Of a DNA stretch of 64,000 bases, positions 3,421 to 63,576 are shown one piece after another. Below the pieces are notes generated by a model, which saw nothing but the letters and a program-made list of their open reading frames with translations, was not told the DNA's origin and did not search any database. Within the stretch, counting starts at the first letter, position 1; every line of letters starts with the position of its first letter. The position numbers and the translations under genes are program-made. This DNA comes from Utricularia gibba (Eukaryota > Plantae > Magnoliophyta), in NCBI GenBank assembly GCA_002189035.1, contig NEEC01000010.1, positions 930,001-994,000 on the forward strand, in the 5' to 3' direction.

Positions 3421-3428
3421 GCTGAGCT

Positions 3429-15345: not shown

Positions 15346-17605
15346 ATGTACATTTCTGAAAAATTGAGAACTAGATTCTTGATACTGGTGAATATGAGAT
15401 TTGGGACAAAGAACCGGATGAGTTGATTGAGAGTGAAATTCCAAACCGTGTTTGTCCACTGGGATTTGCCTTAAGCACGGAGCATTTTCGTTGTGGTTGC
15501 GCTTACCATTATTGCCCTTTTTAGAAGAAATATTAAAATGTTTAGAGATTACTTTATCTCATTTGACTCCAAGATCTATCTCATATGTGTTGGCTTTTGT
15601 GAGTATTTGTGAGGAGTTATCTCTTGAGGTGGAACTTCGTTATTTTTTTGCTGTGAGTATATACTCTAGGATTCTAAACAAGAACCACTACACCCAAAAG
15701 GGAAAAAAAGGGTTGGTGCTAGTGAAGGATGTGAGAAGAGAATTTGAGAAATGGTGGACAAGTTTTGTTTTGATATGTCCTCCAATGGAAACTAAATTTC
15801 CTCAAATTCATCCTAATTCGAGTGAAGTAGGTAAGACAAAAGGTAAATCTTTCATTGTATTGTTAGAAAAAATATGAATAAAAATATTTCATATTTTTAT
15901 TTCATATTTGTATTGAATGTTTTTATTAAATGTATTATGATTGAGAATTTTTTTTAATCTACTTTGATTAAATCTATTGTTATTGAATAGTTTTCTTAAA
16001 TGTTTTTAGTGAAGTTAATCTTATTAAATCTAGTTTTTATTGAATATTTTTCGGAATCTACTTTTATTCAATCTAATCTAATTAAATTTGTTTGTTGATT
16101 TTTGTAATCTCTTATTATTCAATATTTTTGAAAGAGATTTTTTTTGAATGTATTTTTATTCAATCTATTCGTATTGAATACTTTTTTTATCTATTTTTAT
16201 TCAATCTATTATTATTGAATATTTTTATTGAATATTTTTAATTTATTCTTATTGAGTATATATTTATAGAGTTTAGTGTTATCGAATATTTTTATTCACT
16301 ACCCTTTTCGAATATGTGTATTCAATTTATTGATGTCGAGTTTAAACTTATCGAAATTACACATATTTAATATTTTTATTGAATATTTTTGTTGAATCTA
16401 TTGTTAATAAATCTACTTTTTTTGTATAATTTGATACATTGCACAAGAGGATGTACAAGATCTTATCCTCCTCTCGTCAAGTATGCAAAGAAGTTTTATT
16501 GACATTTTACCACCATTTGTGGATGCACTGGGGACAAAAAGAATAAAGACTTGTTTAGGAATGAGAGGACACATGAGAGTAATGATGTTGAAGAGGATGA
16601 GCTCACACATGGTCTCAATGATGTGGATGAAATGTTTGAATTTATAACAAAAGAGAATGAAGAGCTTCACTACAAGTTGGATTGGTATGAGAGCCGTTGG
16701 GCATATACTAGACCCTCTTTGAGTTCCTCTGAGCCTCAACGAAAGCTAATAATCTTGGATGTCAATGATGTGCTCCTAGACATTGTGTATAGGACTGGAC
16801 CGTCAAGGTCACGAATCCCTCCAGATAAAATTATATATGGCCGATCAGGTACTAAGACAACACTTATTTTTGTGTGTTATATGCATTCAAGATTTGTGAG
16901 ATATCATAGGTAAGTTTTGGTGTAATTTATGCAGTCTTTCTACGTCCATATGCCCGTAACTTTATTAAGTGGTGTTTGGATAATTTTGATGTAGCCTTAT
17001 GGTCTTTCTGTGGCGGGTACATGTGTTGCATTTTTTTTTTGTTGGTATTTAGAATGATGCCAATTCTTGCAATTGATTTGTTTTGTAGGGAGCAGCTACA
17101 AGCAATCACTAAATGGGTCTTTTCACCTTCATTATTTGATAAACTCATTTTTGTGTGGGATCAAACGATGACTATGGACACAGGTGCACGTGTTCACAAC
17201 AATCCTAGCAACACGGTCTACATGAAAGAGTTGAGTCGTGTATGGGCTTTCAACAATGGATTAAACACAAAATATGACCTTCACAATACCTTATCGATTG
17301 ATGATTCGCCCCACAAGTAAATGAAAAATCCGGTAAGTCATTTTTGCTATTCTACTCTAGCATACACTTAGTTATACATCAAAACTAACTCTTAATTTTT
17401 CAAGAAAATAATTGCAAGTCTCTATTCGCATACTAATAGGGATGATGCATCACTAAATGTTGATGGTGAGATGCGAACTTTCCTTGAAGGGTTACAGTAT
17501 GCTCATGATGTTCCAAGTTATGTTAATGAGAACCGAATAGGACAGGCTCCCATACATGAGGGACATGCCTTATGGGAGTATTATGCATGCCTACAAGATT
17601 GCTAG
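15346..17605 (+). pseudogene. Copy A of the spliced chimeric gene: Transposase_28-like module + acidic/coiled-coil linker + NIF/FCP1-like HAD phosphatase domain
   Basis: Inferred exons 15346-15842, ~16448-16848, 16935-17016, 17089-17332 and ~17405-17605 with GT-AG. Peptides LRLPLLPFLEEIL..TPRSI, KWWTSFVLICPP, KLIILDVNDVL, VFLRPYARNFIKWCLDNFDVALWS, LIFVWDQ, IDDSPHK*MKNP and GEMRTFLEGL. Frameshifts plus a TAA at 17318. Confidence 0.85.
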
Positions 17606-17927
17606 AGTGAGCCTCTAATATTAATTCTTTTGAACACCTATGTTGTAGTTGGAATATTTTTGTTGATGACTTTTTTTTTCTAATCGATAATTATGTTTTT
17701 GTTAGTGTTAAATTCATTAAATTCCCATATGCATCGTGTGAAATATGCTCTAGTGAATAGTGATCCTTTAAATCCATTTTGGAGGCACGTATAATGATTT
17801 CTAACGGTGCCTCTAATGCCTCGGCAACGTGTACCTCAGATTAGGGTTGTTGTTAGAGGTCATCCAGTCACTCTGATTCATTATCGAGGGTACCTGAGAT
17901 CTTCTCTGGAGATTGGACACCCTTAAT

Positions 17928-18240
17928 TAGACCTGGGCACGGGTCGTGACTCATCGGGTAATGAATCAGACTCGTCGAGTCTCTTTTCTATTACGGGTTC
18001 ACAAGTCGACGAGTATACGAGTTTTGAACCCCAACTCGTATCATACCCGAGTTGACTCATTACCCATCGATTCGTCGAGTTGACTCGAGTATAAACTCAT
18101 CAACTCGTATTTTTTTCTTATTTTTTTTAAATATTTTTCTATTTTTAAATTAATTATTTTTTGTGTGATTATGTTTTTATTTATATATATATTACTTGTT
18201 GTATGAATAAATACACAATCGTGTAACAGACTGTAACTCA
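17928..18240. mobile_element. Terminus of a second hAT-like element interrupting the first
   Basis: Starts TAGACCTGGGCACGGG followed by dense GACTCG/CGAGT subterminal repeats. Homology to the 55931-59289 element stops exactly here. The partner end was not found. Confidence 0.55.
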
Positions 18241-18780
18241 AGGAAGTATGCTAGAGCAGCGCTTCTTGAGATGTAGATGTTTTAAAGTACCTCAGTCATC
18301 CAACTCTCTAAAGCATGCCTACGTTGAGATGGATTAATATAAGTTAGAACAAAAATGCCACAAAACCAACTAATACTTATTGCCAAAGCAAAATTTCATG
18401 AAACGCATCCTCAATGTAGTGAACTTTTTTTAGATATCCATTTTTCATGCTCACACGATCGTTTGGAGGAGCAGGAGGCAAACTTGTATGGCTAAAGGAT
18501 TCTTGAGCTGCCAATATCAAGTAAACACGCCATAGTCCAAGAGATTTGCACATATTTTTATAGAAATTAAGGCAAGACAAGATATTGAGCAACTTGGGAA
18601 AAAAACTAAGAATGTAATAAGAAGGATATCATAGACAAGGCTGAACAAAACAGCCGGGCAGCAAGCTGTAATAGTGTGCATTCTTTGTGATCAAGACAAG
18701 ATTCAATGAGATAACTGAGTTGACAGATGCAGTAGAGATCACTGACCTCAGATGAAAGCTGTAAGAAATGACTTAATCTT

Positions 18781-21300
18781 TGATGGTGAATCTGCAAGTG
18801 AACAGAAACCGTCGAAGTAATAAAATAAGATCGTATCCACAGGGAATTGTTATTGGAATTTTCTTTTCAAACAAAGACTGAAAAAAGAACGAAAACAAAA
18901 GAAAGATTTGGTTTTAAAAACAATAAGAAAATTGGCCTTGGATCCAGGATTCACCTTGCTTAAAACTCGCCCAAACTTGTGTGTGTAAACCTTGAAAACT
19001 GATCTGCTGGCGTAAGCTCTGGAGGTGTTACTCTAAAGTAGTGCTACTCGGTGACCGTTATAGCACCGTCCCTTGTTTTGTGGGATTATAGAATCAACCA
19101 CTTCACCAGGGCCATTTCACCTCTTGTGATAACCCGTGTTTTCCCCACACCCAAATCTAACCCCTACACCTCACACCTCGCAGACAGATCAGATAGAATG
19201 TGCCTTACCAACGATGTCCGATTGAGCCCTTATCCTTAGGTGATTGAGGCCAACCTTTGATTCTCTCATACTCCCTTCGGGTTATGTGATACTAAAGAGC
19301 ATGTTGATAAAGAAAATGTTGCAAAAAACAGAATCAAACCTCAAATTAAATGTTGAAAAACATAGTAAAATAGTCTCACGCGCACGAGTTGTGCAAGCAA
19401 AGCTTCACCGCAGATCCTCAGCCGCAAACGCCTACAAGCGTAGACTTGACTCTAACATGAAAATAGACACGAAAATAGGAAAGATACAAAGGAAAAGTGG
19501 TCAAAGACGTTTTTAATGGTTGAGGGGGTGGGGTATTTATAGGAGAGTAGATCCAAGTCTTCGTATTGAGCTTATTCGATGGGCTTGGATAAGATCTTCT
19601 ATCCAAATCTTTTATCGAAATCTTTGAGATCATCTTCATATCTTTATCTTATTTATGAATCTTGAACCAAATCTTCATCATTTGACCGAGTCTTGGCTGA
19701 GATTCGTGGCTCATCAAATCCATAGATTGCAAGCCACCTTTGGAGAATCATTTCTCAATAACATCAAATCAAGTGTTTCCTACCCATAAAAGATACAATT
19801 GAACAAACCAGAAAATCCAAGGAAAAAAGAACGTTTTTTTTGGCGAAAATACCCAACTACGAGGACGGGGGCTACAATCCCTTCTGAGAGGCATAGGTGT
19901 TTTCCCTCCTCCTTTACCGTCCTAGGTCTGATAATGCGCCTGCGGGCCCTTCTCAGAGAGGTTCCACACCTCGATTTGGTCCCAATCTTGCTGCTGTGCG
20001 TTCCCGTGCAGGACTTGATCAGATCCATCGCTACGCCTTCGATATGCCCCTGCACGATTAGCAGCAGATCTGCCTATACCTGTTCCTTCATTTATCAGCA
20101 AGGCTGATCCAGTTGCCCTTTTTGGCTGGTGTCTTGGCATCCGTGCTCATTCACTATCTGGTTCGGACATCACCAGATAGTCCTCCTCATGTCCAGAATG
20201 CCTTCTAGACATGGTTTCCCTGCGTTGCGCTTGTGCTCGACGGCTTTCCAACCTAATTCTCCGACAGGTCCGGTCAATTTCCAAGTCCAACGGGTGTAGC
20301 TTGGTTGAAGCCCTGTGCCTGCGCATCCAACACTGATTAAAAGCAACTGCTTGCACATGTGCACTAAACAGAATGTCTCGAAAATAACAGAAAAATAAGA
20401 AATGATCAGAAAAGAAATCAGAAAAGAATTTCCAAAGGAATACAATTCCCCGGCAACGGCGCCAAAAACTTAATGGTAATTCTGCAAGTGCACAGAAACC
20501 GTCAAAGTAATAAAATAAGATCGTATCCACAAGGAATTGTTATTGGAATTTTCTTTTCAAAATAAAGACTTAAAAAAATTGAAAAAAAAAGAAAGATTTG
20601 GTTTTTTGAAAACAATAAGAAAAGTAGCTTTGGATCTAAGATCCACCTTACTTGAAACTCGCCCTTGCATGTGTGCAAACCTTGAAGACTGACCTGCTTG
20701 CGCAAGCTTTAGGGGTGTTATGCTAAAATAGTGCTACTCAGTGACCGTTGTAACACCGTCCCTTGTTTTGTGGGATTATGGAATCAACCACGCCACCAAA
20801 TACATTTCACCTCTTGTGATAACCCATATTTTCCCCACACCCAAATCTAACCCCTATACCTTACACCTCGTAGACAGATTAGACAGAATATGTCTTACTA
20901 CTGATATCCGATTGAGCCCTTCTCCTTAGGTGCTTGAGGCCAACTTTTGATTCTCTCACACTCCCTCAGGGTTATATGGTACTAAAGATCACATTGGTAA
21001 AGAAAACGTTGCGTAAAACAGAATCAGACCTCAAATTAAATGCTGAAAAACAGTCACACGCGCAGAACTTGCGCAAGCAAGGCGTGACAGAAGATCCTCA
21101 GTCGCAAGCGTTCACATGCGCATGCTTGACTCTAAACAACAAAAGTTGATGAAAAACGAAGGGAAAGGAATCCAAAACATGCTAGACTCGACTCTAAACC
21201 CTAGATTGACTCTCTGGTCGTCCACCCTTCGACTCTTTAGGTCTTTGCGTTTAGATCTTTTTATAATGGTGGAGACTTGTCGCACTTTTTTGATGGGCTC
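18781..21300 (-). mobile_element. Athila-derived deleted/non-autonomous element (LTR-PBS-gag start-short internal region-LTR)
   Basis: LTR 18781-19766 has TGATG...CATCA ends, and a related diverged LTR starts at 20471. tRNA-Asp-type PBS at 20447-20464. Athila-type gag start MRRHRASTKLHPLDLEIDRTCRRIR. The right boundary is uncertain and no TSD was confirmed. Confidence 0.72.
20447..20464 (-). promoter_or_regulatory. PBS complementary to tRNA-Asp (Athila type)
   Basis: The minus strand reads TGGCGCCGTTGCCGGGGA next to an LTR end. Confidence 0.9.
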
Positions 21301-22379
21301 ACATCAAATCATCTATCCGGCTCTTCTAAGATTTGATACATATCTTCTAGGTTAAGATACAAGTTTACTAAGATAAGATGCGAATCTTATCTTATCCGAG
21401 AATCTTTGACCGAAAAATCATCCGAATAGACCAAATCTTAGCTTCCATCGAAATAGCTCGAAATCCTCCAAATTATTCTGAAAAATCATGAAACACACTT
21501 TCCCCCAAACAGATCAAAGTGGTATGAAAGATATAAAATTCTTCTAAAAACATAAGGAAAGTGGGATAAAAAGAATGCAAAGCCCATCTAAATGAGTTTC
21601 AAAAACCACAAATATTAATCCACAAATTCTTCTACAATCCACGGTTACCCCTTATAGGATTAGCTACATGTCACTTCTGATGTGGTAAAATGGTAAATCA
21701 CCGATCTACTCAACATTATTAATATTTTTCATACCAATTGTATTTGAAAAAAAAAAAATTATTCAAAGTATTGTATTCATTTTACATCAAGGAAAATATA
21801 AATCAAATAAAAAATAGTCATATCATATCTAAGATTTAACGAGATTTTTGTATAAATGTTTAGTACAAATAGTCATATCATATCTATTATTTTATGAAAA
21901 TCATACAAACGTTTTTTCACACATTTTTTTCATACAAAAGTTTCTAAAAAAAATATATTGTGAACAATATACATTAAAAAAATTTAAAATTTAAATATTT
22001 ATATAGAAGTTTTAATCTAATCAACACGTCAAACTCATATAATACAATTATAAGTATTCCTCTTTTTTTATGCCATGATAAATGATAATTTTCTATAAAT
22101 TACTTACACTTTGTACTACAAAGTAAATCAAATTGCGAAATGATTGTTTCAAAACTTTTAGAGGTTTCTATTTTACAAACTTCAGTTTTACAAACTAAAT
22201 GTATAAGAAGGTTTTTGGCTCCAAAATACACTTTATTTCTAAGTTTATGTTATTTTTGTAGTAGAAAAGACTAGTTTTTTTATTCAAGATATATCCTAAA
22301 TTGTTTGTTCCAACTATGAAACTTCTTCCTCAACCTGTGAGTATTTTCTACACCTTGCAAAATTTGGATCGTAGACCCA

Positions 22380-22740
22380 TTGTTGGGTCTCAAATTCAAA
22401 GATCGAATGCATTTTTTTATGCATAGCGTATGTGCATAGCACACGGTTATGGGTTACCCATAACCGACGTCCGTGTGCATTTGATCCTTATGTGTTTTCA
22501 GGATCGAATGCACTGTTTTTTCAGCACACGGACGTGGGTTTAGGGTTTAGGGTTTAGGATCCTAAACCCACGTCTGTGTGCTTTCGATCCTTATGTGTTT
22601 TAAGGATCGAATGCACTGATTTTTCAGCACACAGAGTGTGCGCCGCACACGGGCGTGGGTTACCCATAACCGATGTCCGTGTGCATTCGATCCTTATGTG
22701 TTTTAAGAATCCAATGCATTCAAAATGTCTGAAATTTTTT
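22380..22740. repeat. Three ~100-bp GATCGAATGCA units with internal palindromes and a short (TTTAGGG)n tract
   Basis: Repeated gatcgaatgca...gatccttatgtgtttt frames; gggtttagggtttagggtttagg at ~22536-22558, followed by its complement cctaaaccc. Confidence 0.75.
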
Positions 22741-23139
22741 CAGACAAATTTTATTTTTTCAGAATAAAAGTACACAAATTTTCTCGAATAGTTTGTTATC
22801 AAAATTATCAAAATGTCTGAAATTTTTTGTATCACTACACAAATATATGTAGTTTATTATTTTTTTTATTTTATGAGAATATTTTATGAGTTATATAAGT
22901 TGTCATCTTTCCATCCTCTTCATTAAAATCGTCTGCGTCCGTGTGCCATGTTTGGTAAACATTTGTGTTAGAATCATTGTCTTTTCACAAACGTTTGTTT
23001 CAAAATTAAATTTATGAAAACATTTGTATCAAATCAATTAAATATCAGGAAAGGTTTGTTTTGAATGTGATTTTACAAACATGTGTGTTTAAATGTGCGA
23101 AATAACCCTACTTTTGTATCAAAACTAAACCTAGCCCAA

Positions 23140-24250
23140 CAAGAAAGTGCCATTTCTTTACTCTAAACTAGGCCAGCCATAAAAGGCATTGCAGGGCTCC
23201 CTTTGATGCCGGCATTTTCTCGTTTCTTTACTTTTTGAATTAAAGTCTGCAAATCTTCATTTATAGCAAAACATTTAACGTCTTCATAGTCGAACCACGC
23301 CGGACTCATCTAGGAAATCAATAGCAATGTTACTAAGATTGTAATAGTCTTATTAGCATTGTTGATTTTCAAATATGTACTTACCCACCCGATGTCTGAC
23401 TTAGGTGTAATGGCATGTGGCGCTTTGATCATAAATAGAAGTATGCTGCATTCACTCAACCCTGGCTGACGTGGTACCTGGAAATCGATCAATAGTTTAG
23501 GAGCATATTATTCATACTGATTGTATTGCATTACGTACCTCCACAAGAATAAGGGGAATGTTCCTAACAATTTCCCCTTCGGAGGAAGAATTCTCGACCC
23601 TAGACTGGTACATATGCCATATGAACCTGGATACGTACATAAGCGACTCAAAACTAAATATGCATATTCTTGTAAAGACTCAAAGAGAATCTTACATTCG
23701 TAATTCTTCAGCTTTTGTGTCCATCATGTTAGTGGAGCCCATGGAGTCTAAGTACAAGACACGTCGTTTTGCTGGTTCAATGGTAGCAAAGTTGCATAGA
23801 ATTAACATCCAAAAATGACCCCTAAAATGAAAAAGACAAATTGGTTGCCCTTTCCTTTCTCCAGAACCAACATACCCGACCTTCACACTACCGCTTCATG
23901 ACTCCCGCATTCAAACCTACTGCAAACGCACTCCCGCATTCTTTTCTACCGCATTTCGGCCGGTCATAGCTTTTTTTTTGTCATTAGGTTGGTCCAAAGA
24001 ACGAGAGTCGGCTTCCCTAAGTCTGTTGTTCCTCAGTAGCTCAGTGGTAGGCCAAAAAAAAAAAAGGTTTTGAATAAGAGCAAGCCAACCTTGAAACTGT
24101 TGGCACGATAAAGCAGGTGGCAAAGGTTTTCCTTCCCATGAATAGTGGTCCGAGATTCTTGGCTCGATGCTACTCAGTTGTGTCATAGTATTGAGAGCTT
24201 GTAAACTCATACATTTCCTGAATTGCGAGGGGAAATGATTCGACTATCTT
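23140..24250 (-). pseudogene. Ulp1-like (C48 SUMO protease) gene remnant associated with a Mutator element
   Basis: HFWMLIL...RRVLYLDSMG (catalytic His region) and QVPRQPGLSEC (Gln/Cys region) in separate exon-like blocks with stops. Confidence 0.7.
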
Positions 24251-34000: not shown

Positions 34001-34005
34001 TCTCA
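31005..34005 (+). pseudogene. pol: Angela-type gag-pol polyprotein with an in-frame TGA at 32070-32072, truncated in RT
   Basis: [61 protein letters not shown] and [11 protein letters not shown]. The frame ends just before the YVDD motif. Confidence 0.92.
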
Positions 34006-34330
34006 AAAGGAGTACATGTTTACCCAAAAGGAGCTCAACCTGTGGTAAGGATGATGGTTAGAACTGATTAAGGATTTCGAATTGGAGGTAAATTACAACC
34101 CTAGCAATGCTAATGTCATGGAAAATGCGCTATGCCGAGTGATGGTGCATGAAGACTTCGCAATGGAATTGGCAAGGATGGAGATTTGCATGGATACAAC
34201 CACTAGCATAACTATGCTTCGAGTAGGGACGAATTTCTTGGAGCAAATACAGGCATCGCAACATGAGGATGACATGGGAGAAGTACTGCGGGAGGACATG
34301 GAGAAATCAGTTGGACTGTATAGCATAATA
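34005..34330 (+). mobile_element. Ty3/gypsy (Tekay/chromovirus-like) RNase H C-terminal fragment
   Basis: [10 protein letters not shown]...[28 protein letters not shown] corresponds to the KELNLRQRRWLELIKDY...HPGKANVVADALSR motif. Confidence 0.8.
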
Positions 34331-35500
34331 GAATGTACTCTATCCTTAGAAAACATAAGGATCGAGTACATTCTATTTTTTATTAAAACTATCGGCATGC
34401 GGAGGTGGCCTACCGGCATGGGTTACGGTAACTCACGTCCGTATGGAGGGTGGCATCCATGTGGAAGGTGAGTGCAATAGTATTTTAATAACAAATAATG
34501 CACTCTATCTTTATGGCCTTTTTTTAATAAAAAAAATAATACATTCCATGCTTCCATCTAAATCAACAAGGACGACTTTTTCCACCATAAATACCATGCA
34601 TTTTGTTCATTCATCCAAATTTGCCGTTAATATCGAACCCTATAATATGTATTCCATGAGCTTCAGCCTTCTGGTGTGTTATTTAATGCACTCGATCTAG
34701 TGCGTGAGCATCAAGCGCAATTTACCATTACCCAATCGATCCATACTCACCGGTAGTGTCGAACGAGGGCACAATTGGGCCAAAATTTACCTTCTAGTCG
34801 ATCCTTTCAGCTTGAGTAACCTCGACCACACGGTGGACGCAATTGAGAAAATTCGCTTTGATATATCAAATCCCACGTCAATACGGTCTTGAGATTGCGT
34901 CCACAGGCACTCAGTTGACACACCTATCGTTACTAAGTGATATTTATCTCTTAATTCCATCCCAAATATCTAGTTAATGCTCCATGTCGTGAGATAATTT
35001 CTATATCTCTTTTAATTACTGCTAAAATACATTACATCACCATTTTTTGATTTATATTTTACTTGATGTAAAATAAAAACAATACTTTCTTTGAATAAAA
35101 ATTTTATTATATAAATACAATTGGTATTAAAAATATTAATTTTGAAACATACGTTATTAATAATGTTGAGTAGATGGATGATATACCGTTTCCCCAAAGT
35201 ACCTCTTGTCGCATTGTGAGAGGGACGCCGTTCGAAATCACGTGTTATTTGGATTGAGAGCACATTTTGTTTTATTTTATTTTATATTATTTGGATTCTT
35301 AGTTGTTATTTGAAGCCAAATCATATTTTATTTTATTTAAAATTTGTATTATCCATCCATCCTTGCACGTTATTTGGCTCGAGTGCGTGTTTTTTTTTAT
35401 TTTAAATGTGTATGACTCATCAATCGATGCTTAATTGTTATATGGATCCCGTGCGTATTAGCACTGAACACTACTATCGCATCCGGAGGAATTTGGGAAT
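34330..35500. repeat. Cluster of dispersed non-autonomous repeat modules
   Basis: Matches 10400-10700 (inverted), 10075-10205, 760-1190 and the GCACTCTATC units at 14450-14730. Confidence 0.7.
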
Positions 35501-35504
35501 CCCA

Positions 35505-37139: not shown

Positions 37140-37453
37140 CTCACTACGTGCCCGCCTCTTGAAGGAGCGCTTCATCGCGTTCCATATACTTTCTCCTCCA
37201 CTCATCCACCTCTTGATCCCGGTGCATAGGATGAATCTGAGGTGGCATATCATGGGATGGCTCCCCATCGCCCACATCGATGTCATCGTCGGGAGTAACC
37301 TGACGATAACTTCGAGGATCACGACTATACGATGCAGGCGCACCCCTTGTAAGCCGCTAGGAACCTAGAACATATCATTCAAAAGCAATACTCAAATTTG
37401 AATAACACGTAAAATTGCATACCCTCCTCATCAATGATCATGATGGAAATCAT
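37140..37453 (-). pseudogene. Copy C: continuation (end of exon 2, part of exon 3) of chimeric gene B on the far side of the copia insertion
   Basis: Nearly identical to 40860-41185, but carries TAG in place of CAG and a 36-bp in-frame deletion. It abuts the ATCAT TSD at 37449-37453. Confidence 0.8.
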
Positions 37454-37875
37454 TGTTGGCTGATGATAAGCTAATCTTGGACAATTTTATGAGACCCGCT
37501 GAAGATTCTGAAGTGCTGTTTGAATATGCTGTGTGCGACGAGGAAGAAGAACGAAAGGGGATGGGAAAGAACTGATGGCTGAATCAGCAGATGCTGGGCC
37601 AAATACCAGCTTCAAATGGTGTAAGATTGCATGCGGGCCCTTCGTAAGCAGCCCAAGTCTGTGCCCAAGAGAAGGACCAAATCCAAGATGGCCCCGATTG
37701 ACGGCAACGGTAACCTGCAAAGCATTCCTGTGCTCAACGGTCACAAAAAAGGGGTCTATAAATAGAAAGACAAATATGTAACCAAATATATTTTTTTATA
37801 CAGTTTTCTTCCAGAATTCTTGCCTAATCTCTCGAGCACTAAGGCTCCCAGTTAGTGAGCTACAGACTTCTTACA

Positions 37876-37895
37876 TGGTGACAGCTGTGGGATTT
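37876..37895 (+). promoter_or_regulatory. PBS complementary to the 3' end of cytosolic tRNA-Leu
   Basis: TGGTGACAGCTGTGGGATTT directly follows the LTR. Its reverse complement AAATCCCACAGCTGTCACCA matches the plant tRNA-Leu(UAG) 3' end as I recall it. Confidence 0.82.
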
Positions 37896-37970
37896 CCTTG
37901 AGAAATCACAAGCATAGATTCAAGTTCGGCTACAAATCAGATCCTACCAATCTTTAGCAAGTCACACTCC

Positions 37971-40500
37971 ATGGCCTCATCATACTTCATGCCTCCTCCT
38001 ACATTCGATGGCAGAGGTGACTACGATGCCTGGGCGGACAAGATGTCTGTCCATTTAGACAATCTGGACCTCTGGGACCTGTTTGAAGAAAATGAAGAAG
38101 AAGAGCAAGCGGATACGGCTCAATCAAAAGAACGAAAATCTTCTTCTTCAGATATGGAAACTGCAGCAGAAAAGAGGCACAGAAAAAAGAGGAAAAAGGC
38201 AATGCATGCACTTACCTTGGCCATGACTGATGAGGCCTATGATCTCATTCTGGACTGCCGATCTCCTAAGAAAGCCTGGAACATACTGCGAAAAATTATG
38301 CCATGACAACAGAAAGGCGACAAAAGGAAATAGCAAAGCAGTGGCATATTCTCAACAACCTCAGCCTGAAACCAGGTCAGTCCATCAGTGATTTAACGCT
38401 CTCTATGAGTGCAGTGGCAAAGCGGCTAAAAAAACTGGGACAACCTGTTGACGATGGTAGAGTTAAAGACAAAATCCTTAAGTGTGTGGGAAAGGACTTC
38501 AGAGCATGCATTGGGATGCTATCCACAACTGGTCTTCTAACCACATACAACTACGAAAAATTGCTGGACACACTCTACAACTTTGAGCAAGTTTAGAAGA
38601 CATATGAAAGGCATGACGAAACTGAGCAAGCTTTCCAGGCAAAGTCTCAAAAAAGAGTTGAAAAACGAGGAGCATACCCTGAATGCCCACACTGCAAGCA
38701 GAGGAACCATCCAGTTTCGAGTTGTTTCTATAACCCAGATAAGATCTGCAACTTCTGCAAGGAGAAGGGCCACATCGAAAGGGTATGCAAGAAGAGATTT
38801 GAAGAAAAATTCGCACAGAAAAATGATGACAAGAAAGAATCAAACTCTACTGCATTGAACTCTGTATGCTATTTTTCTGATGCCAAGGAAGTCATTGATA
38901 TCTACAAGCTGCACAAAGACACATACTCTCAATCACTAACGACATCACAAACAAAGGAACGTGGCTTATAGACAGTGGATGCAGCAACCACTTAACTCAC
39001 AAATTCAGCGCATTCACAAGCTACAAGCCACTGAATGGGAAATCAATAGAAGTCACTGATGGACGACTAATAAGAGCACATGGGATAGGGACTGTACAAC
39101 TTGAAACTTGCGAGCACATACTAAAGATACAAGATGTATACTACGTACCCAAAGCCTCCCACAACCTTCTGAGTGTAGGACAGCTTACCTCTAAAGGGCT
39201 GAACGTCACCTTCAATGGAGCTCTTTGTAGCATATATTCATCATCTGGAAGACTTCTTCTTGAAGTCAAGATGGAAAGCAGAATTTTTCCTATAAGATTT
39301 CAAACTGATAAAAACCTAACTGACACCTGTTTTGCAGCTAAAGATGATGCCTCACTCTGGTACAAAAGGTTTGGCCATGTGAACTACTCCTCACTGGCTC
39401 ATGCGTCAAAATCCAACCTGATGGAGGGAATACCAAAACTGGAACAAGACCATAGGATATGCGAAATCTACCAAATCGGTAAACTCTCTAGACGACCGTT
39501 CGGAAAACGCACCTGGATCACCACCCAGAAGCTAGAGCTAATCCACAGTGACGTATATGGACCCATAAACATCTCAACATCTACAAGAAATAGGTATTTC
39601 TTAATTTTCGTAGATGATTACACTAGATACTGCTGGATATTTATCATCCCTAGCAGATCAGAAGTGGTGAACTGTTTCAAAGCCTTCAAGGCTCAAGTTG
39701 AGAACCAAAGCAGGCAAAGAATTAAGTACATTAGATCTGATAACGGTGGTGAATACATACCGTATGAGTTCACTGAAATGTGTGAACGAGAAGGGATTAT
39801 TCACCAGTTTACTGCACCCTACGAGCAGAATGGCGTAAGTGAAAGAAGAAACAGAACTATAATTGAAATGGCCAGATGTCTGATGTATGAGAAAACCGTA
39901 CCAATGACCTATTGGGGTGAAGCAGTCAACACCGCCGTGTACCTCCTGAATCGACTGCCCACCAAGGCACTGATCGAAAAGAAAACCCCATTTGAGATGT
40001 GGCATGGGAGAATTCCACGGGTTGATCACATCCGCATCTTCGGTTGTGTATGCTATACTCACATCCCAAAACAAAGAAGAAGGAAATTAGACAGGAAAGC
40101 ACTAGTAGGTGTCCATCTAGGATGCAGTGATATAACCAAGGGATACAGGGTATTGGACTTGTCGAGCATGAAAATAAGAATTAGCAGAGACGTGGTCTTT
40201 GATGAATTGAGAGCCTGGGATTGGAGTTCAGGTTACATTGAACCAGTACAGAATCAAGGAAAAGATACACTGGGCCTATTCCTCGAGCTCAAGGAAATTG
40301 ATGAAAATACATTTGAAAGAAAACACCCAAGCCAAGAGACAATCGATACACATGAAGCAGAATCAGACTCTCATCAGAATACAAATCGTGAACTTCAGCC
40401 AAATGTTGAAGGCAATTGGGAACCAACAGATAGTGAAAATATGGTATCAGACCAACAGATATTGACTTCTACTCATTACACGGAACCTGATGAGAGGAAT
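37971..40500 (+). pseudogene. pol: Copia gag-protease-integrase pseudogene (no RT)
   Basis: PTFDGRGDYDAWADKM..LDLWD, twin knuckles CPHCKQRNHPVSSC and CNFCKEKGHIERVC, WLIDSGCSNH, LWYKRFGH, IHSDVYGP and RSDNGGEY; frameshifts in gag. Confidence 0.9.
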
Positions 40501-40542
40501 TTATCTATTGACAGAAATAATGAAACAGAGGGTAATAGGTAC

Positions 40543-41196
40543 CATAACCTTGACGACCATACAGCGACGTCGAAATAGGCGAAGCATAATTGCAGGAACC
40601 TCGAAACATGCGGCCTAATAAACACTGCATCCAAAGACGGGAGGGATTAGAAAGCATTATAAAAGTCACAATGGAAATTAAATAACTTACAGGCTGTCCC
40701 GTTTCCCATCCGTCTATTTGGAGACCTGTTGACTTGCCCATGAATGACATGAGCAAGCAAGCCATTCACGTCTAGAATGAGCAACTTCATCACCCGTCGC
40801 ACGGTTCGTGGTACATGAGTTGAGGAGCGCTCTGCAGACTCCTCTCTGGTCTTGGTCTGTGTTTGAAGGAGCGCTTCATCGCGTTCCATGTACTTTCTCC
40901 TCCACTCATCCACCTCTTGATCCCGTGCCTCCAACTCCCGTTGCAATCGCTGGATTTCAGCTTCCATAGGATGAATCTGAGGTGGCATATCATGGGATGG
41001 CTCCCCATCGCCCAGATCGATGTCATCGTCGGGAGTAACCTGACGATAACGTCGAGGATCACGACTATACGATGCAGGCGCACCCCTTGTAAGCCGCTGG
41101 GAACCTAGAACATATCATTCAAAAGCAATACTCAAATTTGAATAACACGTAAAATTACATACCCTCCTCATCAGTGATCATGATGGGCATCGTATA
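40543..41196 (-). pseudogene. Copy B-inner: exons of the chimeric gene (coiled coil + first part of the NIF/FCP1-like domain) lying inside the copia element
   Basis: Exon 41104-40691 (...EAEIQRLQRELE...MKLLILDVNGLLAHV) and an 82-nt exon 40624-40543 (LFIRPHVSRFLQLCFAYFDVAVWSSR) with canonical GT-AG. Frames are open. Confidence 0.85.
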
Positions 41197-41295
41197 TGTA
41201 ACCAAATATATTTTTTTATACAGTTTTCTTCCAGAATTCTTGCCTAATCTCTCGAGCACTAAGGCTCCCAGTTAGTGAGCTACAGACTTCTTACA

Positions 41296-41949
41296 ATCAT
41301 GGGCATCGTATAACCCTTGGCCACCCAAGCTGACAATAGTAAATCACGGGTCTCCTTATCATATGCCCTCACGCCTAGGAGACAAAGAGATGAAATGAAG
41401 CCACATTAAAATTGAAATAGATGAACAAGTAAACAAAAAATATTACCTTTTATCTTGCCTGTGACACCCGGCTCCAAAACTCGAGGGATGCGATACACGT
41501 CTTCCAAAGGTGGACGTATCCACAGAAAAGTGCGCCACCATGAGCCGAATGACTGTGGGAACCCGAAGTGGATACCCGACCCCCGGAGCGGTCGTATCGA
41601 GAAGCGGCCATCGCGTAGAGCAATGACCTCTACAATTGAACGGAAGGCACGCAAATCACATGGCGCATCCTCTTCCTCACACATCATGATAAATGCTCTA
41701 ATCGTCCCTACCGACTGAGGAGTGATACGGGCGAGAGGCACTCCCATAGCTCGCAGCACTATCTCGTTGAACGAGTGAAGCGGGAGTCGAAGACCACATT
41801 CCATATGGCTCAAGGCAACTGAGAACCCAGTGGCACCTACTCTGCTAGGTGGCTCATCGTCAATTGTCTCCCATTCCTCCGGCATGAATAACGTATAATC
41901 TTCAGGAACATAATACCTTACCCTCACATTATCGACTACTTCTATCGCA
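41296..41949 (-). pseudogene. Copy B-outer: exon 1 (Transposase_28-like) and the start of exon 2 of the chimeric gene, disrupted by the copia insertion
   Basis: Exon 41949-41447 encodes RVRYYVPEDY..GLRLPLHSF..ITPQSVGTIRAFIMMCEE..SWWRTFLWIRPP..GKIKG with a phase-1 donor; exon 2 starts at 41374. Confidence 0.85.
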
Positions 41950-55139: not shown

Positions 55140-55720
55140 AACATTGGCCCTGTGCTTCGACCCTTTTCGGATGAACTAATTAGGGAAGAACCTGAAAGAG
55201 GATTCAGAGTACCAGACAGTTTGCTGACATATCATGAGAAGGGGAATCCCATATCCCATGTTATCGATTTCAATATGAGGATGGCAATAGTTCGACAAAC
55301 CAAGGCTATGAAATGCAAGTTGTTTGATTGCTCACTTCAGAGGAGAGCGAAGACTTGGTTCAAACAACCGGAACCATGTACTGTGACATCTTATAGGGAG
55401 CTGGTGTTACTCTTCACGACCTGATATGATGTTAACATCGAAGCCTCATCATCCAAGGTGACGTTATATTCCATTCAGTATGACCACCAAAAGAGAGTCT
55501 AAGGATGCTTATCGATTGGTTCAACTGTCTAGAATAGAATGTCCTACTGGATCTCAAGGAAATAGTTGATATAATGAAACGGGCTCTAGGAACTTCCAAG
55601 CTGGGGTAGAGCCTATCAAAATCCCCACCAAAAAACCTCAGGGAACTACTGAGGAAGATTATGAAGTACATCCCAAGCGATGACGATCTTACAAACAAGG
55701 CTAGAAGTCCGATAGACATA
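55140..55720 (+). mobile_element. Ty3/gypsy Tat-like gag fragment
   Basis: PFSDELIREE..FRVP..TY...NPISH..F..RM...MKCKLFDCSL..RAKTWF....TVTSYRELVLLF, a Retrotrans_gag-like pattern. Confidence 0.75.
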
Positions 55721-55930
55721 CGGGTGGCCCAAGAGATCGGCAGGGCAAGCGTTAAGAGATATATCAGGTGGAACCCTTTAATTTTTTAATTTTTCAAGAT
55801 ATATTAAAAAATTATTTGTAATTGTTTCTCTTGTGTATGCTCTTTATGATATAGTGGTGATAACACCGTTTTTATTGTATTTTTGTGTGTGTTTTTAAGG
55901 TAGTTTTATGTGGTAAAATATTGTTTTATA

Positions 55931-58900
55931 TAGAGGTGGGTTCGGTTCCGAACCGTACGGTTTCGGTTCGGAACCGAACGGTTTCAACGAACCGTCGGTT
56001 CCAAAACCGCGGTTCACTGTAGACAACGGTTTCGGTTTCGGTTCGGAATCGTACGGACGAAACCTTGAACCGAACCGAAACCGGAACCGTACGGACGGTT
56101 TCGGTTTGGAACCGGAACCGAGATTCGGGAACCGAACCGTAACCGGAACCGATCGGTTATTGTTTATAGGTGTTTTCCAGGCACCCATATGAATCATTGT
56201 GGATGTATGGCAGTGAAATTTATAATAATTATTATTTTTTTAAAATTTAAATATTATCAAACAATATATTTAATAATATTTATTTTTGTATTTAACTAAA
56301 TATATTATGTAATATACTATATTAATTTATAAAAACTATAACTTAAATTACTTGATAGACTATCTCAATAAAATATAATTAAAATCAATATAATATATGT
56401 CTTAAATAAATGAAATAAATAATTAAATTATTAGTATTTGAATATATATTTGATAAAATTAAATTTTTTAAAACAAATACAACAAGATTACAAATCATAT
56501 AAAATGAATAGAATTATTATTTATATATTTGTTCTTTTAAAATGAAGATGTTTATATAGTTGTTTTATATAATGTTTTGTAAGTATTGTGTATTTTTCAA
56601 ATTAAAATAAAACAACATCTATTTCATATATTTTGGAAACAAAATATTAGAAGGATTAAATATATTGCATTTTCAAAATTAACATCACATATTTCACGTC
56701 TCTTAATAATCGTTAAGGGTGTCAAGGCTCCAGAGAAGATCCCAGTCACCCTCAATAACGGATCAAAGTGTCTGGACAACCTCTAACCGTAATCCTAATT
56801 TTAAAGTGTGCGCTGCCTTCATTAAGAGTGTCCAGACTCCAGAGAAGATCTCAGGCACCCTGAATAATGGATCAGAGTGCCTGAACGACCTCGAATGACA
56901 ACCCTAATTCTGAGGCTCACGCTGCTAAGGCATTAGAGGCACCCTTAGAAATCATTATACGTGACTCCAAAATGAATTTAATGGATCACTATTCACTAGA
57001 GCATATTTCACACGATGCATATGGGAATTTAACGAATGAAACACTAACAACATAATTGTCTACTAGAAAAAAAAGTCATCAACAAAAATATTTCAACTAC
57101 AACATAAGTGTTCAAAAGAACTAATATTAGAGGTTATCTCTAACAATCTTGTAGGCATGCATAATCCCATTAAATGCTCCGTGCTTAAGGCAAATCCCAT
57201 TGGACCCACACGGTTTGGAATTTCACTCTCAATCAACTCATCCGGTTCTTTGTCCCAAATCTCATACACATCCGGTATCAAGAATCTAGTTCTCAATTTT
57301 TCAGAAGTGCACATCTACAAAACACCCATAGGTATTGTAATCAAACTACAATAATTGGACAAGATATTTCAATTTGGAACATAGATCAGCAACCCATGAT
57401 GAAAAATAAATCACATACCTTGTTTAATTTAAACAACACTCCAACTAGGTGGTGGGACTATGGGGGCGTTCGGTCGCTTTCGGCTGGGGGGGGGGGGACG
57501 GGGGAAAGAGGTAAGAAAATTTTCTTACCAAATGGGTGGGGATTAGGGTTGTCTTAATTGTCAACGTGGCGAGTGGGTAAAGTAGGGACTGGGGTGGTGA
57601 TGTGTAGCGCTATGTATGGGTGCGTGAAGAGTTGGTTTTCAGTAAATATTTTTGCTGATTTCAAATGAGAAGTGTCGCTCGCTTGAATCGATCCAAACTC
57701 ACTGTGTAATTTTTTTGGAAATGCTGTTTAATTACTCCAATTTTGAGGCATCCAGAGTCGCTAATGTGGGCGCCTGACACCGTCACCCGTAAAATTATAT
57801 TATCTAGGCACCCGTACCCTAATATTTGGGAATTGCGCAATTTTAAAAGAAGACTTAATTTTCAAAAATATACCATTGTTTTCGTGCATTAATTGGATTA
57901 TAAGAAATTGAAAATGAAATTCTTTCATATATCCTAAAAATTACAAAAAAAAATTAAATGACATGTTAATTAAACATTGAAATAAAATTTCAGTAAATAA
58001 AAAATTTTCATGTGTCGTTTAGACCATCTTCCAGACACCCACATTGTATCGTGTGATTGTCTGGAAAGACAGTAGGATACCCTTTTCCAGGCACCCACAA
58101 TGCCTCGCGTGGGTGTCTGGGAAGAGTGGGCGAGACCATTTCCAGGCACCCATATTTGCACATGTGGGTGTCTGGGAGTGTGCAATCATATTCCAGGCAC
58201 TCTATCTTTAGGAACGATAAGGATCGAGTCCATTATTTATTTGACTTAAAAATATTGCACTCTATCCTTATGTTTTCTAAGGATCGAATATCAGTGTATA
58301 ACAAAAAAAATGCACTCTATATTTAGGAACGATAATGATCGAGTGTATTATTTATTTGACTTTAAAATATTGCACTCTATCCTTATGTTCGATCCGTATG
58401 AGTGCAACCCTATTCCAGGCACCCACATTTGCGCATGTGGGTGTCTGGTAAGGATGTATCCAAAGGTTTTGGTAAGTGCTCGGATCATATAATTTTAATG
58501 AAAGGCATGAATACAATGTACTTCATCTTCATACAAAGTAATAGTACTTTATTGGCAACGCATAACTAGTTATTGAGAAAAATATGTAGGTAATGAAATG
58601 TTAAAATATTTATTTGGTTGAACTATCGAAATTATTCAATAAATTTGAGTAATTTAGTATTTTCTATTGAGGTTATACATTTTATATTTATTAATTTCAT
58701 TCTAATTTTATAATTTATAGTATATAAATAAATGAAATAAATTATTAAAGTGATAAAATTATCAGTAATTGAAAACATATACAATAAAATTAAATTTTTT
58801 CAGACACCAACATTAGCTTGTGAGTATTCGAGAAGAACATCTGAAAAACGGAAACCATTCCCTGACCACCCACATTTACTCATGCCTCATGTAGGAGTGT

Positions 58901-59289
58901 CATAAGGGTGCCTCAGATCATTTTCCAGGCACCCACATCTATTGTCTGTGTCTAGGAAGGGGTGTTTCAAAAGATTTTCCAGGCATCCACTTTCATCGTA
59001 TGGGTGTCTGAAATCATATACATTTATTTTTTTTAAAATTTTTTAATTTTTTTTAATTTTTTAATTTTTAATTTTTTAATTTTTAATTTTTTTTTAATTT
59101 TTTTTGGTTCCGAACCGACGGTTTCGGTTCGGAACCGTGAACAGTACGGTTCATACATGGGTCGGAACCGTCGGTTCCACGGTTCCAAATTTGCCGAACC
59201 GAACCGAACCGGAACCGTACGGACATCCACCTCTTGGAACCGAACCGGAACCGGAACCGCGGTTCCGGTTCGAACCGAACCCACCTCTA
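55931..59289 (-). mobile_element. Non-autonomous hAT element, an internal-deletion relative of 10741-17927, retaining an exon-1 fragment of the chimeric gene (~57150-57330)
   Basis: TIRs TAGAGGTGGGTTCGGTTC at both ends; 8-bp TSD GTTTTATA/GTTTCATA (7/8); GAACCG subterminal arrays; internal CCAGGCACCC repeats; EKLRTRFLIPDVYEIWDKEPDELIESEIPNRV. Confidence 0.9.
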
Positions 59290-59344
59290 GTTTCATATGT
59301 GTAATTGTTTACTTTCGTGCATTTAGTTTGTAGTAATGTATTTA

Positions 59345-60435
59345 TGATAACACATATTTTTGAGTGTTTTAAGGTAGGAAAATTATTAATATTTTATTAT
59401 AAAACTCGGATTATATTGTGGATTTCTGTATTTTTGTGATTATCACCATAGTATGTCTTTTATTTCTGATTGGGACTAAATCAAGATTTAATCCCAATCT
59501 TAGTTCTAATCAATTTCTGGAGCGATGCAGCACGTTTCAGCAACCCAAATCATAAGGGGCCGAAAGATAACAGTGAAATTGTAGGAGATATGGACAAAAG
59601 TTGAATCAAGTACACCCAAATCCCAATGTGAAGAAAAAAATAGATTTTTGGAATAATGAAGAAAGAGAAGACTATCTCTCCATTGGAGAGCACGCCACAC
59701 ACAATTCTGGGGATCTGGTAGGAGGTTGTAGTAGAACCATGGAGGATGAAGCAGACAAAACCATGAGTCAAACTATCTTCTGAAGCTTTCTTTTGCTTAT
59801 GAATGACATTATTCTTACTTAGGAGTTGTTTCAGTTTTTCTGTGAGAACTATTTATTGTTTATGTTTCTTTTATGCGTTTTATATTGTTGTTGAACTTTA
59901 GAACCGAAGTAATGTTCATGAAATGTCACAAAAGTATTTTTCTTTTTCTTAGTATGAGTGGTTATGCACTTAAAGGTGTCTTGGGACAAAGGGGGATGAG
60001 CATGTTTATTGTTCATTAGACCACATTACTACTTAATCACTCTACTTCCTTAACAAATCAGGATAGATCTAGGAGGGGGAGGTAGTGGTTTTTATCATAA
60101 ACATCTTTAATTAGAGGTAGATCAAAAATTAGGGAAAAGTAAGGGTTTGGATAGACTTGAGACTTTGCTTGTTAGATAAATGATTTTAGGTTTGAGTGGA
60201 ATAGTTGTGGTGATTAGCATGTTATCCCGTTTACTATCTTTCTGCACATTATCATTGAATTGATTAAATCTTAGTTTAAACAAAATCTCTTAACCGTGAC
60301 GAAATCTGAATGCATTGACTCTCACATAGCAAGCACATATCTCCTTGTGTTCAACCCTAATTCACTATGGTTTATAAATTCATTTGATAGGAGAAATTTG
60401 CATTTTAACGACATTGCAATATTTTTTGTTTATTA
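59345..60435 (+). mobile_element. Athila 'family 2' solo LTR
   Basis: Full-length match to 45515-46680; TGATAAC start; flanks ATTTA/ATTTT (4/5 TSD); no PBS follows. Confidence 0.82.
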
Positions 60436-60862
60436 ATTTTTTTGTGAAAATAGGCTCAATTGGAAACAATTGAGCCGAAAACTCTAATGTTTCTTTCTAG
60501 TGTGTTTCTAAGTCTTAACATGGTAAGAGGTAGTACTAGCAATGCACTTTCTGCATTGAAGAGTCAAAAGGGACAGAAAAGCTATGAAAAAGTAGCTTTT
60601 AATCGAAAGTAGCCGCCCTCTAAAAAGATAAGATTTAGAGCAGAGTTTAACATGTCTACTGTTCACACTACCCTTTACTCTTTTTTTTGGGCATGACAAA
60701 GCTGGGTTTAAGTTATGGACTCTCTTAAGTGACACAAGAGTTAGATTCTCGTGTAAAACCTAGCCAAATCACTTCCGCTTTACATTTTTATGCATTCCCA
60801 TTAATTTCTATGTTCATTCACCCTTGCAGCTTGTTTATTTCAATTGATATTATTTTATATAC

Positions 60863-63576
60863 AGGAGGAGCACCAAGACTGTGTCTCGGTGCTTCCAAAA
60901 GGTGTTGCATGTGGTAATTTGCCTCCATGAGGTGGTGTTAGAAATCCCGGTAGTCGCTGCAGAACGTGCATCCGAAGGAAAGTTTAAACACTTCCAGGTT
61001 GACACATCTTTCATGCTTCTTTTTACAGATGCTTGTAGCACACCACCGTTGTGGGCAGCACCACGTGTTTCACCGTATCCGGTGCTCATAAAAATTAAAG
61101 ATGAGATGAGTGTGAAGCTGATGCATAGTAGTGAGGGTATTTGGTAGTACAGTTAATCGTCATTTGACGAAACACCGCGAACCGTAATATGCGGTGCTTC
61201 TGTACGCTTGGGCTATGCCGCGTTCAGTGCTGCACCGGATGTTTCCTCGTATCCGGTGCTGTCAAAATTTAGAAGTAGATGTGTATGCAACTGGTATATG
61301 TTAGCGTGGGTGATTGGTAGTACAATAATACTCCATTTGACCAAACACCGCGATCCGTAATATGTGGTGTTTCTAAATGCCTGAGGTACGCTACGCATTC
61401 CACAGCACCGCGAAAACATAATCCGGTGTTCTGAGTTCCAAAAACAAAATGCCATAAAATATTGCAGTTATCCAGCATTAAATGCGAAGGGCGGTTGACA
61501 ACCGCCCAGCGCTATTAATACCCCCTAAAAATAAGCGCACAATAAAGGCGCCTGACATTGTGCACTTTCCAAAACAACTTCATTAATTCTACCCATCCAA
61601 CTCCACCCTTTCGGAAAACGTGCAGCAGCACTGCGAAAACGGGGAGCCCGCACTACTCGCTTCATGGAAAACCTGGTGTGGTAGTGGTTACAGACGTGAG
61701 AAGCGCATATGATGATTGGTGGACTAGTTTTGTATGGGTATGCCCACCCACCGCTACAGAATGGCCAACAACGTTGACAGTGTCAGAAAATGTGGGACAC
61801 CCATCAGGTAATCATAAACAATTACTTCGGATATTCACATGTCTTGTTGAACAGTACTCATATTTTTTTGCTGTTTGCGTTGTAAGCATAGAGGTATTGC
61901 CAAAACGTGCGGCAAGGAGGTTTGTGAATTTATTCTCTTGCAGAACAAAGTCCTTGGAGGACGTCTTGCCCCCCTTCATCAATGCCCCTAGGAAACAGTA
62001 TCTGTGGTGCGGAACCCCTCGACACCGTAGACAACGTAGCAGTACAAATGATGATCTTGAGGAGGTGACCCATGAAGAGGATGAAGATGTGCAGCCAGAA
62101 GTCGGGGGCAACACGGAGGGGCCAACACCGATTACGACACATGACGACGGGTGCGGTGCTACCACTGCAAAGTATATCCAAATGGACAGACTGTATGCAG
62201 AGAATCTTGATCTCTGTGGTCGGCTTGCATGGTATGAAGCAAGGTGGCCATACGGTGGACCATCGAGTGATAACACGGCCCCCACCACGGAAGTTGCTTA
62301 TATTTGACGTGAATGGCGTACTTTCGGACAGTGTGTATCCTCGCGAAGTCAGATGGGGAGCGCCAAAGCCGGATGCCGTCATTTACGGGCGAAACGGTAA
62401 TGCAATGTCATTGATATGCATTTAATATTTGGTGCATGTGTCAGTACTATTTCTTGTGCTTGTAGTGTATCTTCGACCAGGTGCACGTGAGTTGATACAG
62501 TTTTGCATGGAACACTTTGACGTTGCCATCTGGTCTTCAAGAGGGCGGTAAGACTGACCACCTAGCAGACAAGGGGGTCCGCATTCCTACTGACATTTTT
62601 TTTTCTGACGACATGTGGCAATGAACAATTGCACGATGTGATTCAGTGGTTACTAGGGACTGCAGCAGCCAGCAAGCTCGTCTTCCAATGGGATGGATCC
62701 AGGTGTGTGGACACCGGCTATCCGGTGCACGATAACAGGAACACAGTTAAGCTTAAGCTTTTGAATCATGTATGGGGCGCCAACCAAGAGTTCAAGGGCA
62801 AATATCACCGTCTTAATACGCTTCTCATCGATGATGCGCCGTACAAATCACTACACAATCCGGTGAGTTTCTGGTTGTGCTCATTCTCCACCATCTTGCA
62901 TCCTATTTCACTTGTTTAGTTTCATTCGACAGCCCGAAAATGTCATATTCCCAACCACCTTCAAGTACACCGCGGTCAATGATTGTTCGCTGGTTCAAGG
63001 GGAGATATTAGGACGTTCCTAGAAGCTCTCATTGACCAAATGGATGTACCCACGCACGTCGATCGCCGTCGGGTAGGTCAACGTCCAATAGACGAGGAAC
63101 ACCCATTGTGGAAGCATTAAAAGACTCTTGTGTAATCGACAGTGCACCTTTGAAATTGCATGGATCTTGCGTGAACTATCCTATGTTGACCTTGTTAGTT
63201 TTTTATCGACCACTTATCGTAATGGCACCGGATGTTCAACATCCGGTACCGTCTCTAGATTTGAAACCTTGTGTCTAGACTTGGTGCTTCGTAATATGCA
63301 GCACCAACGCGGTGCTAGTCCACTTATCGCGTTAGCACCGGATGTTTTAACATCCGGTGCGTTCATTGGATATGCTTCTTTGTGTCTAGACGTGGTGCTT
63401 TGTAATATGCAGCACCAACGCGGTGCTAGTCCATCACTTCTCAATAGCACCGCTATGAATGTGGCGGTAGTCGCAATACAATGTTTGCGGAAAAGTGATC
63501 AAGAACGAAACACCGCGCTTGTTCATACGCGGTTCTTCCACATACGAAGTCAGAACACCGTCTACCCTTTGCAGTG
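60863..63576 (+). mobile_element. Probable CACTA(CACTG)-like DNA element with palindromic ACCGC/GCACCG subterminal arrays flanking chimeric gene copy D
   Basis: Dense CACCGCG/GCGGTGCT/GCACCGGATG motifs at 60870-61560 and 63200-63576. The right arm ends ...CCCTTTGCAGTG. A matching left TIR was not found. Confidence 0.5.
61645..63120 (+). pseudogene. Copy D of the chimeric Transposase_28-like/NIF-FCP1-like gene (5'-truncated, slightly damaged)
   Basis: Exons ~61645-61807, 61892-62396, 62466-62547, 62622-62862 and 62933-63120. Peptides DWWTSFVWVCPP, RKLLIFDVNGVL, VYLRPGARELIQFCMEHFDVAIWSSR, LVFQWDGSRCVDTG, NTLLIDDAPYKSLHNP, VIFP and GDIRTFLEAL. Two homopolymer indels and one acceptor reading CAA instead of CAG. 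Confidence 0.87.

Follow-up and report, generated by a model that had tools for sequence, protein, structure and literature searches.

Several plant DNA transposons encode accessory proteins besides their transposase, among them MURB of MuDR, VANB and VANC of VANDAL elements, the Myb-like ORF1 of PIF/Harbinger elements and TnpA of CACTA elements. To our knowledge such genes are few and each is tied to a single superfamily, and we know of no accessory genes in hAT elements. Here we describe three copies (A, B and D) of a spliced gene in a stretch of 64,000 nucleotides from the carnivorous plant Utricularia gibba (assembly GCA_002189035.1, contig NEEC01000010.1, positions 930,001 to 994,000 of the forward strand), which we refer to as the window and whose first letter is position 1. 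The gene joins a Transposase_28 (TRP28) module to a domain of the NIF/FCP1 fold of the HAD superfamily, and copy A sits inside a hAT element; this hAT carriage is a new result in this window. We think it probable that A, B and D are all dead copies of one accessory (cargo) gene that transposons carried, its product consisting of TRP28, a coiled-coil linker and a DxN variant of the NIF/FCP1-fold HAD domain. The gene appears to be a new kind of transposon accessory gene, and as such a variant within a known category.

TRP28 is the hallmark antisense open reading frame (ORF) of Retand Ty3/gypsy retrotransposons, and is of unknown function with DNA binding predicted (PMC11963269; PMC6317226); it has been published from transposable elements only (PMC11963269). 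The gene described here combines a retrotransposon-specific domain of unknown function with a catalytically altered fold of the C-terminal domain (CTD) phosphatases, and the copies in the window are its fossils only.

Results

Three paralogous copies share one gene architecture

When translated ORF pieces were compared with the window by tblastn, A, B and D recovered one another reciprocally and nothing unrelated. They are true paralogs, with 28-50% amino-acid identity between translated pieces: A and D are 43-51% identical in five blocks (E down to 2e-17), A and B are 28.6% identical over 140 amino acids (E 2e-14), and B matches both D and A in an exon of 82 nt. At the DNA level we obtained no alignment among the copies in the window, and we found no flanking DNA common to the three. 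The motif WWTSF/WWRTF...PP is present in the N-terminal part of the copies, KL(L/I)I(L/F)DVN(G/D) and (V/L)(F/Y)xRP...FDVA(L/V/I)WS follow it, and IDDxPxK...NP is found in A and D.

Re-deriving the splice junctions from the sequence gave a five-exon architecture (exon coordinates in Table 1). A phase-1 position is possible for intron 1 in each of the three copies. Exon 3 has a length of exactly 82 nt in each, with a phase-1 intron ahead of it and a phase-2 intron behind it, and A and D have in common a phase-0 intron 4 directly behind the NP codons. The junction dinucleotides are GT/AG throughout, with the sole exception of the acceptor of exon 4 in D, which reads AA (62620-62621). The original prediction, made from the sequence alone, had claimed the paralogy, the shared motifs, the difficulty of aligning the copies as DNA, the intron phases and the 82-nt exon; all of these were recovered by the reciprocal searches, the motif re-check and the re-derived junctions, and the feature is real and was correctly described.

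Evidence that both modules belong to one gene, as had also been proposed, comes from copy B. Its exons 1-3, spliced at GT-AG sites across two introns, give 977 nt, that is 325 open codons with no stop, and this single frame leads from the TRP28 module through the coiled-coil linker to motifs I and II of the HAD domain. The module order, orientation and intron phases of B recur in A, and in D apart from the missing TRP28 core.

All three copies in the window are dead, in agreement with the prediction that every copy here is damaged. In copy A the frame is shifted near 15480 (exon 1) and 16550 (exon 2), a TAA stop stands at 17318-17320 and motif I is mutated to DVND. Copy B breaks off after exon 3 at its junction with a rearranged copia fragment (integrase ORF 39271-40578), and no in-frame ATG lies upstream of its first exon. 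Copy D starts inside exon 1 at 61651, is frameshifted near 62290 and 62995, and no longer has the acceptor of exon 4. We also note that intron 1 of copy A (15866-16447) is filled by an AT-rich minisatellite whose roughly nine degenerate units contain TTATTGAATATTTTT.

A TRP28 module with the predicted fold of its family

The N-terminal module scores above the Pfam gathering cutoff for Transposase_28 (PF04195, 26.2 bits) in both copies that retain it, with 31.9 bits in A and 38.2 bits in B, and so the original assignment of this part to Transposase_28 is upheld; D lacks the core as a result of its 5' truncation. The WW(T/R)(S/T)F...PP motif forms a second conserved block of the larger TRP28 domain, outside the 69-residue Pfam core. 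The three N-terminal modules, combined into a profile and run against 1.84 billion representative proteins, gave 283 weak matches at E <= 0.001 (best 4.9e-12). We scanned 81 of these 283 proteins, long ones included, with Pfam: PF04195 was found in 80, the remaining one was without any Pfam family, and none of the 81 had a NIF domain.

An AlphaFold2 model of the B module (md4fcd3a89787; 41406-41927, minus strand), computed from an alignment of 43 library homologs and copy A, is a confidently predicted, compact alpha/beta domain of about 150 amino acids with a mean pLDDT of 86.5; as far as about residue 140 the values exceed 90. Compared with the Transposase_28 clusters of the Atlas, the model reaches a template modelling score (TM) of 0.79 over about 158 residues. 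No credible match was found among solved folds (Foldseek E > 1; best VIA-align Z 3.8); a similarity to MerR-type DNA-binding proteins is weak and not significant (Z about 2.7). The module therefore resembles the TRP28 proteins of Retand elements in passing the Pfam cutoff over about 150 amino acids, in its predicted fold and in the coiled-coil-like linker behind it, and it differs from them in its NIF partner domain and its DNA-transposon carrier, neither of which is reported in PMC11963269.

In the library, the N-terminal module is best matched by the product of a plain TRP28 gene, which lies on a plant chromosome record of 169 Mb (GCA_054771495.1; extracted locus 8001-9812), with a second TRP28-like stretch 1.2 kb downstream of it. 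No NIF exons were found within 8 kb of this gene.

A NIF-fold domain with an altered motif I

The C-terminal part had been likened to NIF/FCP1 proteins, and this likeness is confirmed by an above-cutoff Pfam match in copy A: NIF (PF03031, gathering cutoff 21.8 bits) is found in two stretches with 24.0 bits (E 3.4e-5) on 16910-17317, where exon 3, intron 3 (which is open and in frame) and exon 4 can be read through without a stop. Single exons of A gave no Pfam NIF match. Exon 3 alone has NIF as its only family in B (18.6 bits) and D (19.1 bits), both at E of about 1e-3 and close to but below the cutoff, and the two match the same profile positions, 36-63. Language-model features of D exon 4 led to NIF clusters in the Atlas (0.93; 97/100 hits) and those of the B motif-I exon to NIF and other HAD phosphatases (0.88), which we take as leads only; exon 5 gave nothing usable in the Atlas search. 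Sequence searches of solved structures with exon 4, exon 3 and a 136-amino-acid stretch returned chance matches only.

Motif I reads LDVNGLL in B, FDVNGVL in D and LDVNDVL in A. All copies keep the nucleophile Asp and have Asn in place of the second Asp, and so depart from the catalytic DxDx(T/V). Motif II reads WSF in A, against WSS in the other two copies, and motif IV is IDD in A and D. The domain belongs to NIF by fold, but not to its catalytic members. In HAD enzymes, replacement of the second Asp of motif I by Asn removes the general acid/base, and Tim50 provides a precedent for a non-catalytic NIF fold. Because the general acid/base Asp is replaced, the DxN NIF domain is more likely to have been a binding module or a very slow enzyme, by analogy with these proteins. 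The domain is thus similar to the NIF/FCP1/SCP phosphatases, Tim50 included, in its profile match and in the expected order of its motif II (WSS) and motif IV (IDD) regions, but differs from them in a motif I of the form D-V-N-(G/D), in its fusion to TRP28 and in being transposon-borne.

Codon positions point to past purifying selection

Between A and D, 38/29/64% of the first, second and third codon positions are different in an alignment of 269 codons (chi-square p 2e-16), and the corresponding figures are 58/43/69% for A and B and 39/21/57% for B and D, an asymmetry that the protein-guided alignment exaggerates somewhat. For A and D the nonsynonymous divergence (dN) is 0.45 and the synonymous divergence (dS) is saturated, so that no dN/dS ratio can be defined. 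The two retain 49% amino-acid identity over the aligned codons, while their introns and third positions are essentially randomised. Such identity, together with exact exon lengths, makes neutral drift implausible for sequences whose third positions and introns are randomised. We infer that the lineages were under constraint through most of their divergence and that death came later; the pattern in all three pairs supports the past purifying selection suggested by the original prediction.

These data bear on the possibility that host NIF and retrotransposon TRP28 fragments were captured by DNA transposons and amplified without any useful protein, that is, by Pack-TE-like neutral transduplication. 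MULE, CACTA and hAT elements commonly capture genes, every copy in the window is broken and no transcript was seen, as would be expected in that case. Nevertheless, exon lengths, intron phases and motifs have been kept although third positions and introns are saturated, and what has been retained is a complete multi-exon domain, not a fragment. We therefore regard neutral transduplication as improbable.

A hAT element carries copy A

Copy A lies within a decayed autonomous-type hAT element, E1, as an internal gene that follows the transposase on the same strand. The transposase remnants of E1 match the Pfam families hAT-like_RNase-H (E 6.4e-10) and Dimer_Tnp_hAT (E 4.8e-22). E1 is missing about 0.9 kb of its right end including the right terminal inverted repeat (TIR), which we searched for in the window and did not find. 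The 19-mer TAGAGGTGG(A/G)TTCGGTTCG is present at three places, 10741 (+), 55931 (+) and 59271-59289 (-); the first of these marks the left end of E1 and the other two bound a second element, E2.

E2 is reverse-oriented and collinear with E1 (10741-17927) in blocks that are 70-93% identical, and past the last block it has an inverted copy of the left subterminal region together with its TIR. Two internal deletions have removed the transposase (E1 11771-14313) and most of the cargo gene (E1 15488-17579). E2 still keeps the first ~140 nt of the gene (~57306-57172) and its last ~26 nt (57165-57140), plus DNA on both sides, and the deletion junction between them reads GAGCATTT-AATGGG-ATTATGCATG. 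Since E2 retains both ends of the gene and both flanks, the gene was inside the common ancestor of the family, between its ends.

The hAT family of E1 has thus yielded the deletion derivative E2 as Ac yields Ds. As with Ac and Ds, E1 and E2 share TIRs and subterminal DNA, and E2 has internal deletions, a short junction filler and an 8-bp target-site duplication (TSD); in contrast to Ac and Ds, the E1/E2 family has an extra spliced gene, which was removed by one of the two deletions of E2. The original prediction had treated all copies as transposon cargo. For copy A this holds, on the evidence of the hAT TIRs, the TSD and the collinearity of E1 and E2; for B and D it is putative.

It could be argued that the gene is not proper hAT cargo, and that some other mobile unit, or a MULE or Harbinger fragment, landed in the ancestor of E1 and E2 and has been carried along since. 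The lack of common flanking DNA among A, B and D would fit such a unit. However, we found no inverted repeats or foreign termini around the gene within E1, and E2 shows that the gene region was in the family before E1 and E2 split; moreover, a hAT family carrying the gene would still fit its being a transposon-borne accessory gene. We consider a separate mobile unit unlikely. That the copies are ordinary pseudogenes of a multi-copy host gene family, lying by chance in transposon-rich DNA, would agree with the likeness to plant host NIF genes that the original prediction saw in the NIF part, but is highly improbable given that copy A is internal to a hAT element, that a NIF domain is absent from all 81 TRP28 proteins scanned and that TRP28 has been published from transposable elements only (PMC11963269).

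Discussion

We favor the explanation that A, B and D are remains of an accessory gene carried by transposons. Purifying selection would have kept the gene while its lineages diverged to 28-50% identity, and hence the gene would have been of service to its carrier elements. The weakest steps concern what this service might be: TRP28 and the coiled coil may have targeted and dimerised the protein, the DxN NIF fold may have bound phospho-proteins (or at best have been a very slow phosphatase; compare Tim50), and the transposon may have benefited from an effect on the host machinery for transcription or silencing. The action on host phosphorylation or silencing put forward in the original prediction is speculation.

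The gene resembles those for MURB, VANB/VANC, Harbinger ORF1 and TnpA in being a second, non-transposase gene in a TIR element that was apparently selected, and differs from them in having no sequence relationship to any. Like Pack-MULE or transduplicated fragments it brings a host-like domain into a DNA transposon, but unlike them it comprises a complete multi-exon domain with conserved phases and a signature of purifying selection, and it does not show the neutral decay of a fragment.

A number of observations weigh against this explanation. E1 is without its right end and E2 without most of the gene, and so transposition of a complete hAT element together with its cargo is deduced from two copies and not directly seen. 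A search of the window for the transposon superfamily of the carriers of B and D identified none. Catalytic loss in the DxN NIF domain is argued from general HAD enzymology, and the alignment effect on codon positions noted above belongs here as well. None of the public RNA runs listed contains a stretch of the copies, and no fusion transcript was seen in them. The only related contig, about 83% identical to 17431-17574, has an intron-like flank and looks unspliced or genomic. Finally, an intact copy, a close protein relative or a fusion protein was not found in the libraries searched. Word-indexed protein searches with the 249-amino-acid ORF of D, with A exon 4 and with an alignment of exon 4 of A and D were blank, which is weak evidence owing to the length and shared-word limits of such searches.

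We note that contigs from two small public runs under the same species label (of RNA or DNA source) match exon 5 of copy A (17431-17574) at about 83%. The gene therefore has diverged relatives at other places in the species.

The original prediction knew of no description of this fusion, and our full-text literature searches found no paper that describes it: none names PF04195 together with PF03031, and none presents a NIF or CTD-phosphatase gene as transposon cargo. The main text of a 2025 survey of active TIR transposons mentions neither domain.

A wider proposal, which we offer tentatively and consider doubtful, is that one accessory gene moved among at least three unrelated DNA-transposon superfamilies (hAT, MULE and PIF/Harbinger) and was selected in each. 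It might then have helped transposons in general, for instance by trapping phosphorylated factors of host transcription or silencing or by serving as a decoy for them, instead of being the partner of one transposase. If this were true, a helper common to hAT, MULE and Harbinger elements would indicate that all these transposons must manipulate one host pathway, and the orphan TRP28 domain would gain a testable partner activity.

Surroundings of the copies and other elements

Table 1. Positions in the window of the cargo gene copies, the two hAT elements and associated features
Feature	Position	Strand	Description
E1	10741-17927	+	Decayed autonomous-type hAT; left TIR TAGAGGTGGATTCGGTTCG at 10741, transposase remnants, intergenic repeat array, cargo gene A
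hAT transposase remnants of E1	12465-14270	+	In several frames; upstream of A, same strand
Copy A	15346-17605	+	Five exons, two frameshifts, one stop
Copy A exons	e1 15346-15830/15842; e2 16448/16460-16848; e3 16935-17016; e4 17089-17332; e5 17405-17605	+	Junctions re-derived
B'	37159-37446	-	288-bp, 86% identical duplicate of B 40863-41186, across copia fragment
Copy B	40543-41927	-	Exons 1-3 only: 41927-41447, 41104-40691, 40624-40543
E2	55931-59289	-	Non-autonomous hAT deletion derivative of E1 family; 3.36 kb, 19-bp TIRs at both ends with 1-2 mismatches
E2 target-site duplication	55923-55930 GTTTTATA; 59290-59297 GTTTCATA	.	8 bp, 7/8 matching
E1 segments aligned in E2	10741-11177; 11595-11770; 14314-14765; 14887-15487; directly then 17580-17927	-	Collinear blocks (E1 coordinates; reverse orientation in E2)
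Copy D left flank	60864-61650	.	Arrays of short GCACC/GGTGC palindromes, adjoining truncated exon 1
Copy D	61651-63120	+	5' truncated; found by tblastn, NIF score on exon 3
Copy D exons	e1 remnant 61651-61807; e2 61892-62396; e3 62466-62547; e4 62622-62862; e5 62933-63120	+	Junctions re-derived
Copy D right flank	63200-63540	.	Arrays with the same GCACC/GGTGC motifs

The 3' side of copy B is formed by the copia fragment and its other side by AT-rich DNA without a recognisable transposase. The copia fragment (gag 37971-38596, integrase 39271-40578) lies between B and B' within 37159-41186, in a complex rearrangement from which the reverse transcriptase (RT) region is missing. The truncated exon 1 of D stands directly at the left palindrome array, as in a deletion derivative. 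An LTR-like repeat (LTR, long terminal repeat) ends at about 60863, to the left of D, and the window itself ends at 64000.

At 17928, the DNA that stands in place of the right end of E1 begins with TAGACCTGGGCACGGGTCG; the window contains no inverted partner of this sequence. Further on, at 18780-21135, two direct repeats of about 680 bp that are 84% identical (18780-19455 and 20470-21135) resemble the two LTRs of a small element. Hairpin units built on the core AAGGATAGAGTGCA occur at 10603-10671, 14437-14746, 34317-34392 and 58166-58522, that is, in both hAT copies and in unrelated flanking repeats, and may represent a module like a miniature inverted-repeat transposable element (MITE). Lastly, a copia element at 3164-8257 has 244-bp direct repeats (3164-3407 and 8014-8257) that are 99.2% identical and long gag, integrase and RT ORFs (3429-8050), and is probably a young insertion.

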